From sequence record NC_005872.1: a stretch of 28,337 nucleotides of DNA; one strand, written 5' to 3'. Made by a program: the position numbers and the translations under genes. Under the pieces are notes generated by a model that saw nothing but the letters and a program-made list of their open reading frames with translations, was not told the DNA's origin and searched no databases. This document shows, in pieces, positions 6,118 through 23,194 of this stretch. Every line of letters starts with the position of its first letter. Position 1 is the first letter of the stretch.

Positions 6118-6381
6118 ATGGCTGAGGACCCTCTCCGTGAGTGTGTATATCAATTATACTATAATATAATCAGAACCACGGTTGGCGTCTACGTGCCGTC
6201 AAGGCTGGCTCAATGCCTAGCTGTCCTAAAGCTTCAGTTGATTTTTATCGCTAAGTCTACGGGTGATGATATTGATTTTGCCATGTCTAACTGGGGCTAC
6301 ACATGTGGCCCCAATTTCTGTGCCGTGCCGGCTAATTTCGTGGAGATTCTAGTCTACGCTAAAACGCGGTTTGGTTACTAG
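6118..6381 (+). CDS. Hypothetical protein (87 aa)
   Basis: ATG start, AT-rich box about 26 nt upstream, fills the gap between neighbouring genes. Confidence 0.7.
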   Translation: MAEDPLRECVYQLYYNIIRTTVGVYVPSRLAQCLAVLKLQLIFIAKSTGDDIDFAMSNWGYTCGPNFCAVPANFVEILVYAKTRFGY

Positions 6382-6419
6382 AGGCGTAAAATTTAAAAAT
6401 CCGCATTTCATAAGGATAC
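6381..6419 (+). promoter_or_regulatory. Core early-type promoter cassette (partial copy)
   Basis: 6381-6423 is identical over 43 bp to 21105-21147 (GAGGCGTAAAATTTAAAAATCCGCATTTCATAAGGATACATGG). Confidence 0.85.
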
Positions 6420-6814
6420 ATGGGCGCACCCAACCAACAACAAACTCAGGACAGAAGCGTGGACTTTTTCACCAATAAGATAGGCTGTAACGTGTCCAGT
6501 CCGCTTAAGCATGTGGACATAGTTGGGGAAATCGTGGAGGAGGCGGTTTACAATTTCCTCATTGACGCTGGCGATAAGATGTGCGTCGGTAACAAGATTG
6601 GGGTCTGGAAAGTGAGTAAATGTGAGGGGTCCTCAGGCTCAGGTGGTGAGAGGCGTAAATCGCTCTATGCCAAGGTGCCTAAGGGCATAGGCGTCACAGT
6701 ATATCTGGCTAATGGTAGGGTCCAAGGGAGGCTTATTGACATAGGCGTCTATGAGGTCCTTGTGGAGGTGGGGGGTGACATAATCTATATCCACAAGGAC
6801 CTAGTCTATGCGTT

Positions 6815-6830
<16 letters not shown>
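6420..6830 (+). CDS. Two-domain protein with C-terminal Sm/Hfq-like domain (ORF137-type)
   Basis: [24 protein letters not shown]...IYIHKDLV aligns by eye with Hfq [25 protein letters not shown]...MVYKHAI; Gly/Ser linker between domains. Confidence 0.65.
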
Positions 6831-8222
<1,392 letters not shown>

Positions 8223-8250
8223 GCTTAAATATCACAAGGAAAAGTTTTTC

Positions 8251-8799
8251 ATGCCTAATTTTGCCACGGCGGACATAGTCAATGATTACAATGCGCAACA
8301 GGTGTTGCTTACCAATATCGAGTGGATGTTTCTGTTTGCTTTCGTGTTGGCTGTCTTGTTTACGCTAGTTGATAGGGAGAGTAGGGCGTCAATGAGGCAC
8401 TTTCTCTCCGACTTGATGGTTAGGTGGGGCTTAGCTGGCTTGGGTCTGTGGACTATCGTGNTTATCTTCTTTGGGCTTTATGAGCTGGGGCTTCAGAGGG
8501 GCTTATTCCACTTTATCCCCTTTGTCGGTATTGCCGAATATGGGGGCGTGTGGGGCGTTGCTATCAGTGGCGCTATGGCTCTCTTATTCTTTGTGTCTAG
8601 CTTATTCCTTCAGGCGTTGATTAGGACCCCCAACGTGACTAAGGTGGTGAGGACTCCGTATTACCCCTATCTGGAGGAATACGCGCACTACCTATACCAG
8701 TGGTGGCGCTATTACCAGCAATATCAAGACTACTATCAGGCGCATCAACAAGAGGAATACGCATATGCCACCAATAGACAACGTGACAGGTCCTTTTAA
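8251..8799 (+). CDS. Membrane protein (about 3 TM) with Tyr/Gln-rich C-tail
   Basis: The track start 8167 lies inside the upstream gene; ATG 8251 lies about 27 nt after CTTAAATA. One ambiguous base at 8461. Confidence 0.75.
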   Translation: MPNFATADIVNDYNAQQVLLTNIEWMFLFAFVLAVLFTLVDRESRASMRHFLSDLMVRWGLAGLGLWTIVXIFFGLYELGLQRGLFHFIPFVGIAEYGGVWGVAISGAMALLFFVSSLFLQALIRTPNVTKVVRTPYYPYLEEYAHYLYQWWRYYQQYQDYYQAHQQEEYAYATNRQRDRSF

Positions 8800-8814
8800 T
8801 TATCTATTATAGAC

Positions 8815-9135
8815 ATGAAAACTCAAACTAGACCCAAGAAGAGGAGGCCCAAAAACCTAGAGAGGCTCTATTTGGCACCTATACGCTCCGACGGCCTTCT
8901 GGTAGTCGTGGAGGGCGGTAGGTCCTATACTAAACAAGAGATCATGTTGCGGGCTACGGCGTTTCTTAACGTCTCCGACAGGATTGAGTGTGAGATTTGC
9001 GGCCGTGTCTATGACGGCACCAACTATTTCATGGTGGAGTATACCGGCCTCTTGGACAAGCTAAGGCATGCCTATTGCGGTGATTGTAAGCCTCAAATCA
9101 AGAAGATACTAGACATCATCTATAGGCGGATATGA
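8815..9135 (+). CDS. Zn-ribbon protein (C-x2-C-x25-C-x2-C)
   Basis: CEIC...CGDC; same spacing and internal residues as 26950-27327. Confidence 0.8.
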   Translation: MKTQTRPKKRRPKNLERLYLAPIRSDGLLVVVEGGRSYTKQEIMLRATAFLNVSDRIECEICGRVYDGTNYFMVEYTGLLDKLRHAYCGDCKPQIKKILDIIYRRI

Positions 9136-9491
9136 CGGCTAGGAATCCCTTCAGGAAATACCGCAACAAATACCTTGACAAGTTTCTCATTACTGTAGCT
9201 ATTGAGCTGGCCTTGTTTAGCTACATAATTGCTGTGTACGTGTACAAATTGCCGCTTATATTTTCTAGGTGGGCTCTGCCGTTGATTATATCAACTATAT
9301 TGGCTGGGTTTGTGTTGCTCTATTTGGTGTTTGCCTCTATGTTCTACATATTCCAGACTCTGTATTTCTGGAGGCTGGAGAGGCTCTATGAGAGGAATCC
9401 TAGGCTGGCGGTGAGGTATTTCGCTAAGGACTACCTTTCTGAGGAGGCTAAGCTAGCCAGAAAGGCCCTCAGTCTTGTGGGCCTTTCCTAA
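9132..9491 (+). CDS. Small 2-TM membrane protein
   Basis: ATGA overlap with the upstream stop; two hydrophobic stretches flanked by basic ends. Confidence 0.8.
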   Translation: MTARNPFRKYRNKYLDKFLITVAIELALFSYIIAVYVYKLPLIFSRWALPLIISTILAGFVLLYLVFASMFYIFQTLYFWRLERLYERNPRLAVRYFAKDYLSEEAKLARKALSLVGLS

Positions 9492-9516
9492 TCCCAACTT
9501 TTTTCTATTTACAAAC

Positions 9517-9580
9517 CTCTAAACTTGGTTAGACTTTTATCTCTCGGCGTGGTCCGGAGGACCTCTCGCTTTATCTCGGC
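9517..9580 (+). repeat. 64-nt dispersed intergenic repeat (copy 1)
   Basis: 60/64 identical to 23131-23194; a degenerate copy lies at 15366-15408. Confidence 0.9.
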
Positions 9581-12013: not shown

Positions 12014-12363
12014 TGAAATGGTTTACCCACATAATTTGGGGCGCCTTTTTTCCGATATTGTTAGGCGTGGACGTACGTGAGGCGGTTTCATTGGCTGTGT
12101 TTCACACGGTATTGACGGACACCCTGGGGCATGTCGGACATGGACCTTACGTTAGGCGTGCTTCTTATCACGACGTCTTATCACTTTTCTTTGGTATTAT
12201 GATTGCGGCTATGATGCACAATTTGGCATATCTATGGCTAGGCGCTATCCACGTGGTGCTTGACAAGCTATCTCCCGGGCGGTTAGGTGTCAGCTATCTG
12301 TATTCTCTTGTGTGGGCCATTATACCCGCGATAATTTTATATATATTGGGTGTCCATCTTTAG
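12013..12363 (+). CDS. Membrane metal-dependent hydrolase, YdjM/DUF457 (DUF1286-like)
   Basis: FTH, TD.LGH, RRASYH and GAIHVVLDKLSPG follow the His/Asp pattern of YdjM-like proteins; TAATG coupling to the upstream gene. Confidence 0.6.
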   Translation: MKWFTHIIWGAFFPILLGVDVREAVSLAVFHTVLTDTLGHVGHGPYVRRASYHDVLSLFFGIMIAAMMHNLAYLWLGAIHVVLDKLSPGRLGVSYLYSLVWAIIPAIILYILGVHL

Positions 12364-12364
12364 C

Positions 12365-13111
12365 ATGCGGTTAAGTAAAATTCCAATGCCGTTGCTCATT
12401 GCCGCACTAGTGGCTACCACGGCGGTGGTGGTATATCTCCAGCTATCTGTGGTGTCTGTGCCAATAGTGGCGGACCCCAACTTTACAACTACGCTTGTGG
12501 CCGGCACTCCCTATCTGTGGCGTGGCGCGGCTAGTGAGTTCAACATAGCCTCTAACGCAACAATAAAGCTTACGTACATGCCTGTGGCGCACGTGATTTA
12601 CCTCAATGGACCTCTTGGCAACATAACGCTTGGTGGCGGTAAGTGGGTGGTCTACCTTAAGGGTGGGCGGCCTCTCTTAGTAGAGAAGGTTACCTATTCA
12701 ACCGGCTTTAGCGTGTATTACATCTTTAAGCTTGTCAACATGACTAAGGTTAGCGGGCTGAGCGTATTGGTGCCTAACGTGTTTACTGTCGGAGACGTCT
12801 TGTCTAGCGATGAGTTTAGCGCAATTCTATCCCTTGGCGCAACTACTCCGTTATACCGCGTTACCCAAATCACTACTAACGGCACACATATAATGGTCCA
12901 ACTAGGTGACGCGAGTCTATCACAGGTTGACCAGACAGACTATTTCCAGCTACCTCCAGTAGTAGAAACCACGGCTACTAAAATCACGTCTAGCGGCTTT
13001 GGCGTGAGCTATGTAGCTAACACGACTACCGTGTCGGCTTATGTCATGCCGTATCAACACATTGTTATTGTGCCTAAGGCTAACGCTAGGGTGGTTATAA
13101 CGGCGAAATAA
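12365..13111 (+). CDS. N-anchored beta-rich putative virion protein ('IPIP' leader family)
   Basis: KIPMPLLIAAL...YLQLSV leader resembles those of 17717 and 18554. ATG 12365 is preferred to GTG 12350. Confidence 0.75.
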   Translation: MRLSKIPMPLLIAALVATTAVVVYLQLSVVSVPIVADPNFTTTLVAGTPYLWRGAASEFNIASNATIKLTYMPVAHVIYLNGPLGNITLGGGKWVVYLKGGRPLLVEKVTYSTGFSVYYIFKLVNMTKVSGLSVLVPNVFTVGDVLSSDEFSAILSLGATTPLYRVTQITTNGTHIMVQLGDASLSQVDQTDYFQLPPVVETTATKITSSGFGVSYVANTTTVSAYVMPYQHIVIVPKANARVVITAK

Positions 13112-13171
13112 CTCCCCTTTTTTCTCTAGGATAGACAAATAATTTTTTAATAAGAGTCTAAATTATTCACC

Positions 13172-13912
13172 ATGTTATTGCCTGAAGGCGCTGGATTACT
13201 AGGACTACTGGCGATAGCGCTACTCAATAGAAAGGCTATACCCATTGCTCTGATTACGCTCTTTGTGTCCGCGGCTGTGGCTGTGGCAGGTGGGGCCGTA
13301 TACGCGGCTTTCACTCCCCTAATGGCTGGGGCCATTGCTTTGTATGCGCTTAGGCAGGAGGAGAGAGTCATTGAGAAGGTGGTGGGCCTCTTTCTGGGGC
13401 TGTCTATTATATGGGCCTCCGACAACACGGCTATAGCACAAGTGTTTGCCACGATTTCCTATGAAATCGTGAAGCCCTTCTTTGACGCGCTTGTCAATGT
13501 GATGGGTGTCATAGGCTTTGGTGGCGTCTTGGGTGCCTTGTTGGCGTGGTCTCTACTATCGCCTAGGCTTATTTCTATTGCTGAGAAGGAGCCTCTAGTG
13601 TCTATGGGTTATGTCCTCTTGGGTGCCGTCGTGTTGGCGGGTGCCGTTGCGGCTGTGCCTCCGTACGTGGCTCTAGCCATGGCTATAGCCTTACTTAACC
13701 AATTCAGTAGAGCCCTTAGGGGCAATATGGAGGCTCTTGGTGAGATTGCTCCGGCCTTGTTCATATTGGCTACCTTGATTCCTCCCACTACATTGGCGCC
13801 TTTGGGTGCCGTGTTGGCTGTCATTGAGCTAGCCTTTGGTGTCCTTAGTCGGAGGCACTTGGCTGGCGCGGCTATGTGGGCCACGGCGGCTATGTTGGTG
13901 GCCGGGCTATGA
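13172..13912 (+). CDS. Polytopic membrane protein
   Basis: 246 aa, Ala/Leu-rich; TTTAATAA about 26 nt upstream; preceded by a T6 terminator (13118-13123). Confidence 0.85.
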   Translation: MLLPEGAGLLGLLAIALLNRKAIPIALITLFVSAAVAVAGGAVYAAFTPLMAGAIALYALRQEERVIEKVVGLFLGLSIIWASDNTAIAQVFATISYEIVKPFFDALVNVMGVIGFGGVLGALLAWSLLSPRLISIAEKEPLVSMGYVLLGAVVLAGAVAAVPPYVALAMAIALLNQFSRALRGNMEALGEIAPALFILATLIPPTTLAPLGAVLAVIELAFGVLSRRHLAGAAMWATAAMLVAGL

Positions 13913-15257: not shown

Positions 15258-15447
15258 AACCCGACTTTTTTCTTCTTTACAAACATATAACGCAGCTATT
15301 TTACTTTTTTCTAGGGTGTGGGGGAGCAACGGCACTCTTACCACATGTCAAGAAGGGCTTTGATATTTATCTCTCGCTTTGGCTAAGGGGGCCTCCCGCT
15401 TTATCTCGAAACTAAGGGGGAGGATAAGAGTTTTATATCTATGAGAT

Positions 15448-21052: not shown

Positions 21053-21143
21053 GCTTTTAAATCGGCGCGCCTTTTTTGTTTCAACTCTCCCCCTTTCTTT
21101 ACGTGAGGCGTAAAATTTAAAAATCCGCATTTCATAAGGATAC
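21053..21143 (+). promoter_or_regulatory. Full promoter cassette: box A (-91), box B (-66), TTTACG-N5-CGTAAA (-46), TATA (-28)
   Basis: GCTTTTAAAT at 21053, GTTTCAAC at 21078, palindrome 21098-21114, TTTAAAAA, GGATAC-ATG. Confidence 0.9.
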
Positions 21144-21644
21144 ATGGCTAAGAAGAAAAAGACCCAAATCCAGGAGGGGCTGGAGGCCCCTCAAAAGGAT
21201 ACTGTTTTTCCTGAGACGGGTGCGGCCCAAGGGGCCGCGGCGGCTACTCAAGTGACTATACCGGATGACGTGGCTGAGCTGATTAGAGCCACGCTTAAGG
21301 TGGCGATAGCACAACGTAAGATATATGGCCTTAGCACTACGTTGACATCATTGACTAAGACGGTGGCTAGGGCTCTGGAGAAATACATTGACGGTATACC
21401 GACGGCAACGCTTAGGGATTTCATCAAGCGTGAGGTGACGGCTATGGGGTATCCGGTTATTGAGGCTAGGGTTGACTACACGGGTGTGCCGTTTATTGCT
21501 GAGACGGTGATACTGTATAGGAACTATGAGGAGATTGTGGACATGATTAGGACAGGGCGCGCGGAGACTCTTAAGCCAGTTATTACGGGTGACGGCATTG
21601 ACCCCATATACGACAAAATGGTTAAGACGGGGTCCAATGCCTAA
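21144..21644 (+). CDS. Hypothetical protein with Lys-rich N-terminus
   Basis: Leaderless ATG directly at the end of the cassette; 166 aa. Confidence 0.85.
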   Translation: MAKKKKTQIQEGLEAPQKDTVFPETGAAQGAAAATQVTIPDDVAELIRATLKVAIAQRKIYGLSTTLTSLTKTVARALEKYIDGIPTATLRDFIKREVTAMGYPVIEARVDYTGVPFIAETVILYRNYEEIVDMIRTGRAETLKPVITGDGIDPIYDKMVKTGSNA

Positions 21645-23068: not shown

Positions 23069-23130
23069 TCCGCTTTTCGAAATCGGCTTTTTTCTTCTTT
23101 ACAAATAGCTAATGCAGCTATTTGACATTT

Positions 23131-23194
23131 CTCTAAACTTGGTTAGACATTAATCTCTCGGCGTGGTCCGGAGGACCTCCCGCTTTACCTCGGC
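23131..23194 (+). repeat. 64-nt dispersed intergenic repeat (copy 2)
   Basis: 60/64 identical to 9517-9580. Confidence 0.9.

Follow-up and report, generated by a model that had tools for sequence, protein, structure and literature searches.

The globuloviruses are, to our knowledge, among the least understood viruses; we know of almost no globulovirus protein with a known function, and of no replication protein that has been recognised in them. Pyrobaculum spherical virus (PSV), of the family Globuloviridae, is represented by the 28,337-nt sequence AJ635161 / NC_005872, which is its complete genome and constitutes the window analyzed here. One gene of this genome, ORF137, encodes a small protein whose C-terminal part resembles the Sm/Hfq fold, which cells use to handle RNA. 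The locus raises the question of whether this resemblance is real and, if it is, whether the viral protein handles nucleic acid as well. The gene and its parts are listed below.

6420..6830, + strand: ORF137 (PSV gp09; PDB 2X4J), 136 aa plus stop, annotated in AJ635161/NC_005872
6465..6659, + strand: N-terminal domain (residues 16-80, DUF5607), Pfam 162 bits
6627..6647, + strand: GSSGSGG inter-domain linker (residues 70-76), variable in relatives, of low pLDDT
6660..6827, + strand: C-terminal Sm/Hfq-like domain (residues 81-136, DUF5608), with a short helix at 82-85 and strands at 91-96, 99-108, 112-117, 120-125 and 131-133

A preliminary description of the locus had pointed to a structural-genomics crystal structure of this protein, and the structure exists. 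A search of the PDB sequences with ORF137 returns 2X4J, "hypothetical protein ORF137", at E 1.6e-88. The structure dates to 2010, its entry holds one chain, and it was solved via Se-SAD by the Scottish Structural Proteomics Facility, which listed it as "Uncharacterized" (PMC2883930). Two domains of the protein are recognized in Pfam, DUF5607 (residues 16-80, 162.3 bits) and DUF5608 (residues 81-136, 141.5 bits), each above its cut-off of 25; both families were built on ORF137. Krupovic et al. 2013 described PSV ORF137 as a variant Hfq-like protein, citing the 2012 review "Postcards from the edge" for it (PMC3543421), and the fold was reportedly first described in the Krupovic et al. 2012 review in Adv Virus Res. 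The Sm/Hfq fold of ORF137 is therefore already published, having been in print as Hfq-like by 2013, while a literature search found no paper testing the function of the protein. The deposited sequence of 2X4J reads E-E-V-G where the genome reads E-V-G-G, at residues 116-119 (6765-6776) in the loop between strands 3 and 4. The E-E-V-G reading occurs in none of the 23 relatives of ORF137 and is probably a clone or deposition variant.

The C-terminal domain almost certainly has the Sm/Hfq fold, in a compact Hfq-like form. An AlphaFold model of residues 74-136, made from a 24-sequence alignment, has a pLDDT of 86.7 and shows a short helix ahead of five strands, the last two of which are joined by a 3-10 turn. 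The model is validated by its superposition on the crystal structure 2X4J, with an rmsd of 0.8 Å and a TM of 0.88 (Foldseek). The Foldseek matches listed beyond 2X4J are all Hfq proteins, from Listeria, Aquifex, Thermotoga, Caulobacter, M. jannaschii, Pseudomonas, E. coli, B. subtilis and Neisseria. Sequence identity over all rows is 18-31%, and the Hfq rows with shorter alignments superpose with an rmsd of 1.3-1.5 Å over 48-49 residues; for those that come directly after 2X4J (Listeria, Aquifex, Thermotoga and M. jannaschii) the rmsd is 1.3-1.4 Å. A second structural aligner matched SmAPs besides Hfq, and the ESM Atlas clusters nearest to the model are Hfq families (TM 0.81-0.82). The elements of the Sm fold, namely an N-terminal helix and a strongly bent, five-stranded antiparallel sheet that forms a small barrel, are all present, the helix being much shorter in the model than in Hfq. 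The Sm/Hfq fold that had been proposed for this part of the protein is borne out by both the model and 2X4J, and the fold match rules out that the likeness to Sm arose by chance. In Sm rings, strand 4 pairs with strand 5 of the neighboring subunit, and the rings are hexamers or heptamers; the single-stranded RNA bound by members of the superfamily is U-rich or A-rich. A complex prediction with four copies of the C-terminal domain scored 0.08 against a mark of 0.42, which carries no weight in either direction as to rings; it is rather doubtful that ORF137 closes into a hexameric ring of the Hfq type.

At the sequence level, the resemblance to Hfq is weak but consistent and is more than chance, because Hfq is the secondary family match in three independent libraries (PDB, Pfam and NCBIfam). 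When a profile of the C-terminal domain is compared with PDB sequences, the five matches that follow 2X4J are all Hfq or Hfq-like, including MJ1435 at E 0.0017 and the Listeria and Aquifex Hfq proteins at E 0.013-0.042; weaker rows hold a Sulfolobus SmAP (E 1.1), B. subtilis Hfq (E 1.6) and a spermidine synthase (E 2.5). In Pfam, Hfq (PF17209) is the best match after DUF5608, at E 0.063 and 13.3 bits against a cut-off of 27, with DsbC_N next at E 0.43. In NCBIfam, TIGR02383 (Hfq) is the sole match, at E 0.002 and 17.9 bits against a cut-off of 61.7. By score, ORF137 thus lies outside the Hfq family as defined by the PF17209 and TIGR02383 cut-offs, and its Hfq scores are too low to survive a large-database search. 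A profile of the family alignment found no Sm/Hfq relative at E <= 0.001 among 1.84 billion proteins, the matches being one family member and long repeat proteins with multiple hits over short stretches. JGI pipelines label several relatives of ORF137 as 'sRNA-binding regulator protein Hfq', and an ESM Atlas feature search gave scores of 0.82-0.84, which serve as leads only. The archaeal SmAPs are more remote: the C-terminal domain has no match to Pfam LSM (PF01423) at E <= 10, the best SmAP in the PDB is the one at E 1.1, and ORF137 is not a member of the SmAP/LSM group by sequence. Recent capture of a host SmAP is an unlikely origin for the gene, since sequence affinity to SmAPs is absent.

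The Hfq-like motif spacing that the preliminary description saw in the last ~55 residues is real, and the HMMER alignment that displays it is nearly gap-free. It places residues ~83-131 of ORF137 on the Hfq proteins of Aquifex, Listeria and M. jannaschii with a single one-residue gap, after N98-G99. In this alignment, Y95-L96-A97-N98-G99 falls on the Hfq motif Y/F-L-x-N-G (YLANG on YLVNG), Q102-G103 on Q/R-G, and Y111 on Listeria F43, the aromatic residue of the U-pocket in strand 3. The Sm2 motif of Hfq, [YF]-K-H-A-I, contributes its Lys and His to the proximal uridine pocket. In ORF137, H125-K126-D127-L128-V129 lies on F57-K58-H59-A60-I61 (HKDLV on FKHAI), so that the Sm2 Lys is kept as K126, opposite K58, but the Sm2 His is replaced by Asp (D127); HKDLV is invariant in the 24 sequences. 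ORF137 accordingly agrees with Hfq in the strings of the Sm1 region and in the strand-3 pocket aromatic, and departs from it in the Sm2 motif, where Asp stands for His. The GSSGSGG linker, likewise described earlier, is present at residues 70-76, a position that is taken in the relatives by a variable Ser/Gly/Asn-rich stretch. Because the fold matches but the family score and the Sm2 His do not, the most fitting description of ORF137 is that of a two-domain, Hfq-like variant specific to the virus and outside the curated Hfq family, not that of Hfq proper.

Several cellular and plasmid proteins can be compared with this variant. MJ1435 of M. jannaschii (2QTX, 4X9C, 5DY9) is a single-domain protein of 71 aa with an FKHAI Sm2 motif and 18-25% identity to ORF137, whereas ORF137 has an extra 65-aa N-terminal domain, HKDLV, and a shorter N-terminal helix. 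Bacterial Hfq proteins (Listeria 4NL2/4NOY, Aquifex 5SZD, Thermotoga 4Y91) match the fold of ORF137 with an rmsd of 1.3-1.4 Å at 26-31% identity and have YLxNG, QG, the pocket aromatic and the Sm2 Lys in common with it; unlike them, ORF137 scores below the family cut-offs, lacks the Sm2 His and comes from a virus of Thermoproteales (Pyrobaculum, Thermoproteus). A parallel in architecture is offered by plasmid proteins of Thermococcales and Methanococcales that combine a zinc finger with an Hfq-like domain (pCIR10 gp2, pP12-1 gp2, ECE1 and ECE2) and that have been grouped with the PSV protein (PMC3543421). Like ORF137, these are two-domain proteins of hyperthermophile mobile elements with the Hfq-like domain at the C-terminus, and their genes lie in an operon with presumed replication genes (PMC3543421). 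However, their N-terminal domain is a C2H2 zinc finger whereas that of ORF137 is DUF5607, with no detectable sequence similarity, and their genes are located downstream of a helicase whereas ORF137 is a first cistron. Archaeal SmAPs (H. salinarum 6TFL; P. aerophilum SmAP3 1M5Q) are heptamers and lack an N-terminal domain of the ORF137 type.

A word-index search identified 23 relatives of ORF137, all metagenomic and 58-90% identical to it, and all of them carry both DUF5607 and DUF5608 except one 76-aa fragment. In comparisons of ORF137 with three relatives, pS is 0.5-0.9, which is near saturation, and pN is 0.05-0.28; dN/dS is 0.03-0.06 where computable, in both domains, indicating strong purifying selection. 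Sequence searches of virus and plasmid collections returned little: a scan of viral_contigs contained no relative of ORF137, the nearest virus record (G001, a 5.5-kb fragment) does not include the gene, and tblastn of ORF137 against phage and archaeal-virus records recovered only PSV itself. The C-terminal domain likewise had no tblastn match in the plasmid collection, which may not hold archaeal plasmids.

According to a 2020 preprint, only ORF239 is conserved in PSV2 among the five PSV proteins with solved structures. A very divergent counterpart of ORF137 in PSV2, previously unreported, was located by a fold search and synteny.

NC_074653 13731-14138: PSV2 ORF25, 135 aa, counterpart of ORF137

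In the BFVD, the model of the C-terminal domain matches this 135-aa PSV2 protein with TM 0.72 and an rmsd of 1.3 Å. The PSV2 gene order ORF25-ORF26-ORF27 equals ORF137-ORF235-ORF239 of PSV, ORF27 being the homolog of ORF239, and PSV2 ORF25 has its own TATA-like box, TTTTAAAA, 27 nt before its ATG as well as a 4-nt overlap with ORF26. When 16 PSV2-type sequences are combined into a profile, hhalign places it collinearly on the profile of ORF137 over 120 columns (E 6e-5, probability 65%), and PSV2 ORF25 alone aligns with the ORF137 profile at E 5.5e-4. PSV2 ORF25 is likely to be orthologous to ORF137 because the two have the same length, position and promoter placement, match in structure, and align as profiles over their full length, although Pfam annotates neither DUF5607 nor DUF5608 on PSV2 ORF25 and its identity to ORF137 is about 21%. 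The PSV2 protein keeps VYNFL in the N-terminal domain, S-x-Y before strand 1, G-x-L in strand 2 and an A-x-C-x-P tail. It has no equivalents of Y95, N98, Q102, Y111, H125 or K126, that is, no YLxNG, QG or HK, and its C-terminal domain carries no net positive charge. The Hfq-type contact residues are therefore a property of the PSV-type subfamily and are not conserved family-wide. In the two Thermoproteus globuloviruses, no ORF137-type gene lies beside the ORF239 homologs.

The N-terminal domain had been described as unrelated to the C-terminal one. This stands insofar as it forms a separate Pfam family, but the two domains share a weak, non-significant collinear resemblance. The profiles of both the PSV-type and the PSV2-type subfamilies align the N-terminal domain (6456-6572) with strands 1-3/4 of the C-terminal domain (6684-6800) in a common register, placing VYNFL on VYEVL, at E-values of 0.02-0.06, which are not significant. 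The likeness may reflect a degenerate tandem duplication. An AlphaFold model of full-length ORF137 is unreliable, with a pLDDT of 43 and an rmsd of 13.8 Å to 2X4J, and the tandem-Tudor rows that a fold search with it returned carry no weight, the model being poor. Residues 13-40 (6456-6539) also resemble a ~39-aa repeat found in long, tail-fibre-like proteins with a Peptidase_S74 chaperone domain at their end; single repeats match with only 7-10 bits, while summing them gives E-values of 9e-15 and 3e-12. It is because of this resemblance that the DUF5607 model scores tail-fibre-like proteins at 72-75 bits, above its own cut-off.

Cys55 (6582-6584) and Cys133 (6816-6818) are the only cysteines conserved in both subfamilies, and PSV2 ORF25 contains exactly two Cys, which align to them. 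This pairing in the alignments suggests a covalent (disulfide) or metal link between the domains, from the N-terminal domain to strand 5, which is plausible because intracellular disulfides are a known trait of the host. The edge through which the subunits of Sm rings make contact could then be taken up by this link.

The gene is preceded by a promoter cassette with the following elements.

6381..6423, + strand: 43-bp perfect repeat with an exact copy at 21105-21147, core of a nine-copy promoter cassette
6392..6399, + strand: TATA-like box TTTAAAAA, starting 28 nt before the ORF137 ATG

The preliminary description was right that the gene carries a 43-bp perfect copy of the cassette core, since 6381-6423 and 21105-21147 are identical. 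The repeat contains a BRE-like GCGTAAA, followed by the TATA box and then by a conserved spacer that leads into ATGG. Each of the nine cassette copies ends on an ATG, namely that of ORF137, ORF131, ORF198, ORF167, ORF179, ORF171, ORF102, ORF183 or ORF126, and the sequences upstream of the ORF137 relatives show no variation in the GTAAAA / TTxAAAA core or in the ATGG. The distance of 28 nt between the TATA box and the ATG, taken with the usual archaeal spacing from TATA to the transcription start, implies an ORF137 mRNA that would be leaderless or nearly so. Eight of the nine copies are found in the right-hand third of the genome (19380-26953), before the small ORFs 131, 198, 167, 179, 171, 102, 183 and 126. 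Within the cassette, the 20 nt that separate the TATA box from the ATG are conserved as well, which exceeds what a basal promoter needs and so indicates either recent duplication or a site for a shared regulator.

Downstream, ORF137 heads a compact six-gene run (6420-9491) in which the genes overlap or are separated by short gaps. Its second and third cistrons, together with the first overlap, are given here.

6815..6830, + strand: ORF137/ORF235 overlap of 16 nt, with the ORF235 ATG at 6815 and the ORF137 stop at 6828-6830
6815..7519, + strand: ORF235, second cistron, conserved as PSV2 ORF26 (32% identity, E 3e-13; BLASTP)
7506..8222, + strand: ORF239, third cistron (PDB 2X3M, Pfam ORF239-like), a globulovirus core gene and synteny anchor

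An overlap with the next gene, which had been put forward as translational coupling, is thus present, and it is conserved, the 16 nt being kept in relatives down to 58% identity (including L002, L004 and L006). The overlap is likely to be the site of translational coupling. The invariant tail of ORF137, A131-L132-C133-W134, is partly dual-coding because the ATG of ORF235 sits inside the L132-C133 codons. Metagenomic synteny extends further, and contigs of 6-31 kb keep the order ORF88a-like, ORF137, ORF235-like, ORF239-like and onward. Two labels given to this run lack support: 'early' for the operon, and 'AEP-like' for ORF235, which finds none in Pfam, PHROGs or PDB sequence searches, which returned no match to ORF235 at all. 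By eye, ORF235 and PSV2 ORF26 (L008:2738-3343) share Y-P-x-x-D-x-D and [WY]-H-[IV]-V-L, strings resembling motifs I and II of primase-polymerases, and a P-Y-T-D string is common to TSPV1 GP15 and ORF235. A 73-nt element is present in three copies (9508-9580, 15338-15410 and 23122-23194), the first of them in the gap just after the last gene of the ORF137-headed run; it could be a terminator or a regulatory element.

What, then, might ORF137 do? The explanation that we tentatively favor, with somewhat less than even confidence in it as a whole, makes ORF137 an accessory protein, built from two domains, of globuloviruses that infect Pyrobaculum. Its C-terminal 55-60 residues fold into an Sm barrel of Hfq size, which a flexible Ser/Gly linker connects to the 65-residue N-terminal domain, and the gene is the first cistron of a conserved ORF137-ORF235-ORF239 module with a BRE/TATA promoter ~28 nt upstream. 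The Sm-like domain would bind single-stranded nucleic acid, most likely RNA. By alignment with Hfq, the candidate residues are Y95, N98-G99, K/R100 and Q102 on the distal face, Y111 and K126 in the proximal pocket, and R78, R79, K80, K85 and K88 on the basic rim. The targets of the protein would be viral transcripts or replication intermediates, on which it would work jointly with the ORF235 and ORF239 products translated alongside it. Nucleic-acid binding of any kind is slightly favored over its absence. A role as an Hfq-like RNA chaperone, which had been suggested earlier for viral small or antisense RNAs and which would engage single-stranded RNA through the Hfq-aligned residues, is possible by analogy but falls short of an even chance; the substitution of D127 for the RNA-contacting Sm2 His and the absence of the contact residues from the PSV2 ortholog argue against it. 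Rfam contains no family that matches anywhere in the PSV genome.

The absence of these residues in PSV2 also bears on the proposal that the Sm-like barrel is a protein-protein or assembly module that binds no nucleic acid and serves as an adaptor or scaffold for ORF235/ORF239 or for virion morphogenesis. The PSV2 ortholog keeps the fold-level pattern and the two Cys while retaining none of the Hfq RNA-contact residues, and the Sm-like barrels matched include proteins that do not bind RNA (the spore-coat proteins GerQ and CgeA, Gemin6/7 and MscS domains). The resemblance of residues 13-40 to a tail-fibre-like repeat points the same way, and the tight, conserved stop-start overlap with ORF235 would suit a fixed protein proportion. 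On the other hand, the PSV-type subfamily maintains its Hfq-like residues and basic patch under strong selection, the low scores of the individual repeat matches weaken the tail-fibre argument, and ORF137 is not among the annotated major virion proteins, so that an assembly role is, on balance, unlikely. ORF137 is itself unlikely to be a major virion protein, VP2 and VP3 being annotated elsewhere (12350-13912). If the barrel does bind nucleic acid, its partner could be DNA, and ORF137 could assist genome replication, or the coupling of transcription to replication, as an accessory factor in the manner of the plasmid zinc-finger and Hfq-like proteins. Krupovic et al. 2013 propose such a role for the Hfq-like proteins of archaeal mobile elements, citing the PSV protein (PMC3543421). 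The architecture of an extra N-terminal domain and a C-terminal Hfq-like domain is the same, Hfq itself has been crystallized on dsDNA (5UK7, among the structural matches), and the D-x-D and H strings of ORF235 and PSV2 ORF26 look primase-polymerase-like by eye. Yet profile searches do not support ORF235 as a primase-polymerase, globuloviruses have no identifiable replication proteins according to their ICTV profile, and tblastn shows no similarity to the plasmid proteins in a collection that may lack archaeal plasmids; a DNA-binding role is accordingly judged improbable.

Interference with host rings, in which ORF137 would poison SmAP assemblies by co-assembly, is barely credible. ORF137 has no sequence affinity to archaeal SmAPs (the Sulfolobus protein at E 1.1 remains the best, and LSM is unmatched), which makes mixed rings unlikely; its Sm1 and Sm2 strings are of the Hfq type, while rings of the Sm and Hfq types have different numbers of subunits and different interfaces; and the N-terminal domain, along with the C55/C133 pair, may take up the edge of the ring. 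A more elaborate proposal, which we regard as quite improbable, would treat ORF137 and PSV2 ORF25 as tandem Sm-like proteins, the N-terminal domain being a degenerate duplicate of the C-terminal one that is pinned to it by a C55-C133 disulfide. Such proteins would assemble in a non-canonical way, for instance as trimers that behave like pseudo-hexamers, and would serve as the dedicated nucleic-acid chaperone of a cryptic globulovirus module for replication or expression, co-translated with ORF235. If this tandem reading were true, ORF137 would represent the first functional Hfq-type system of an archaeal virus.

Beyond the published fold, the present analysis adds the conserved promoter, the overlap, the purifying selection in 23 relatives and the divergent PSV2 ortholog, and it cautions that conservation of the Hfq-type contact residues does not extend to the wider ORF137 family. 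The Hfq-like domain is one of very few functional handles on the globuloviruses. Should ORF137, as in the explanation favored here, bind RNA or ssDNA, this would mark ORF137-ORF235-ORF239 as a nucleic-acid-processing unit.
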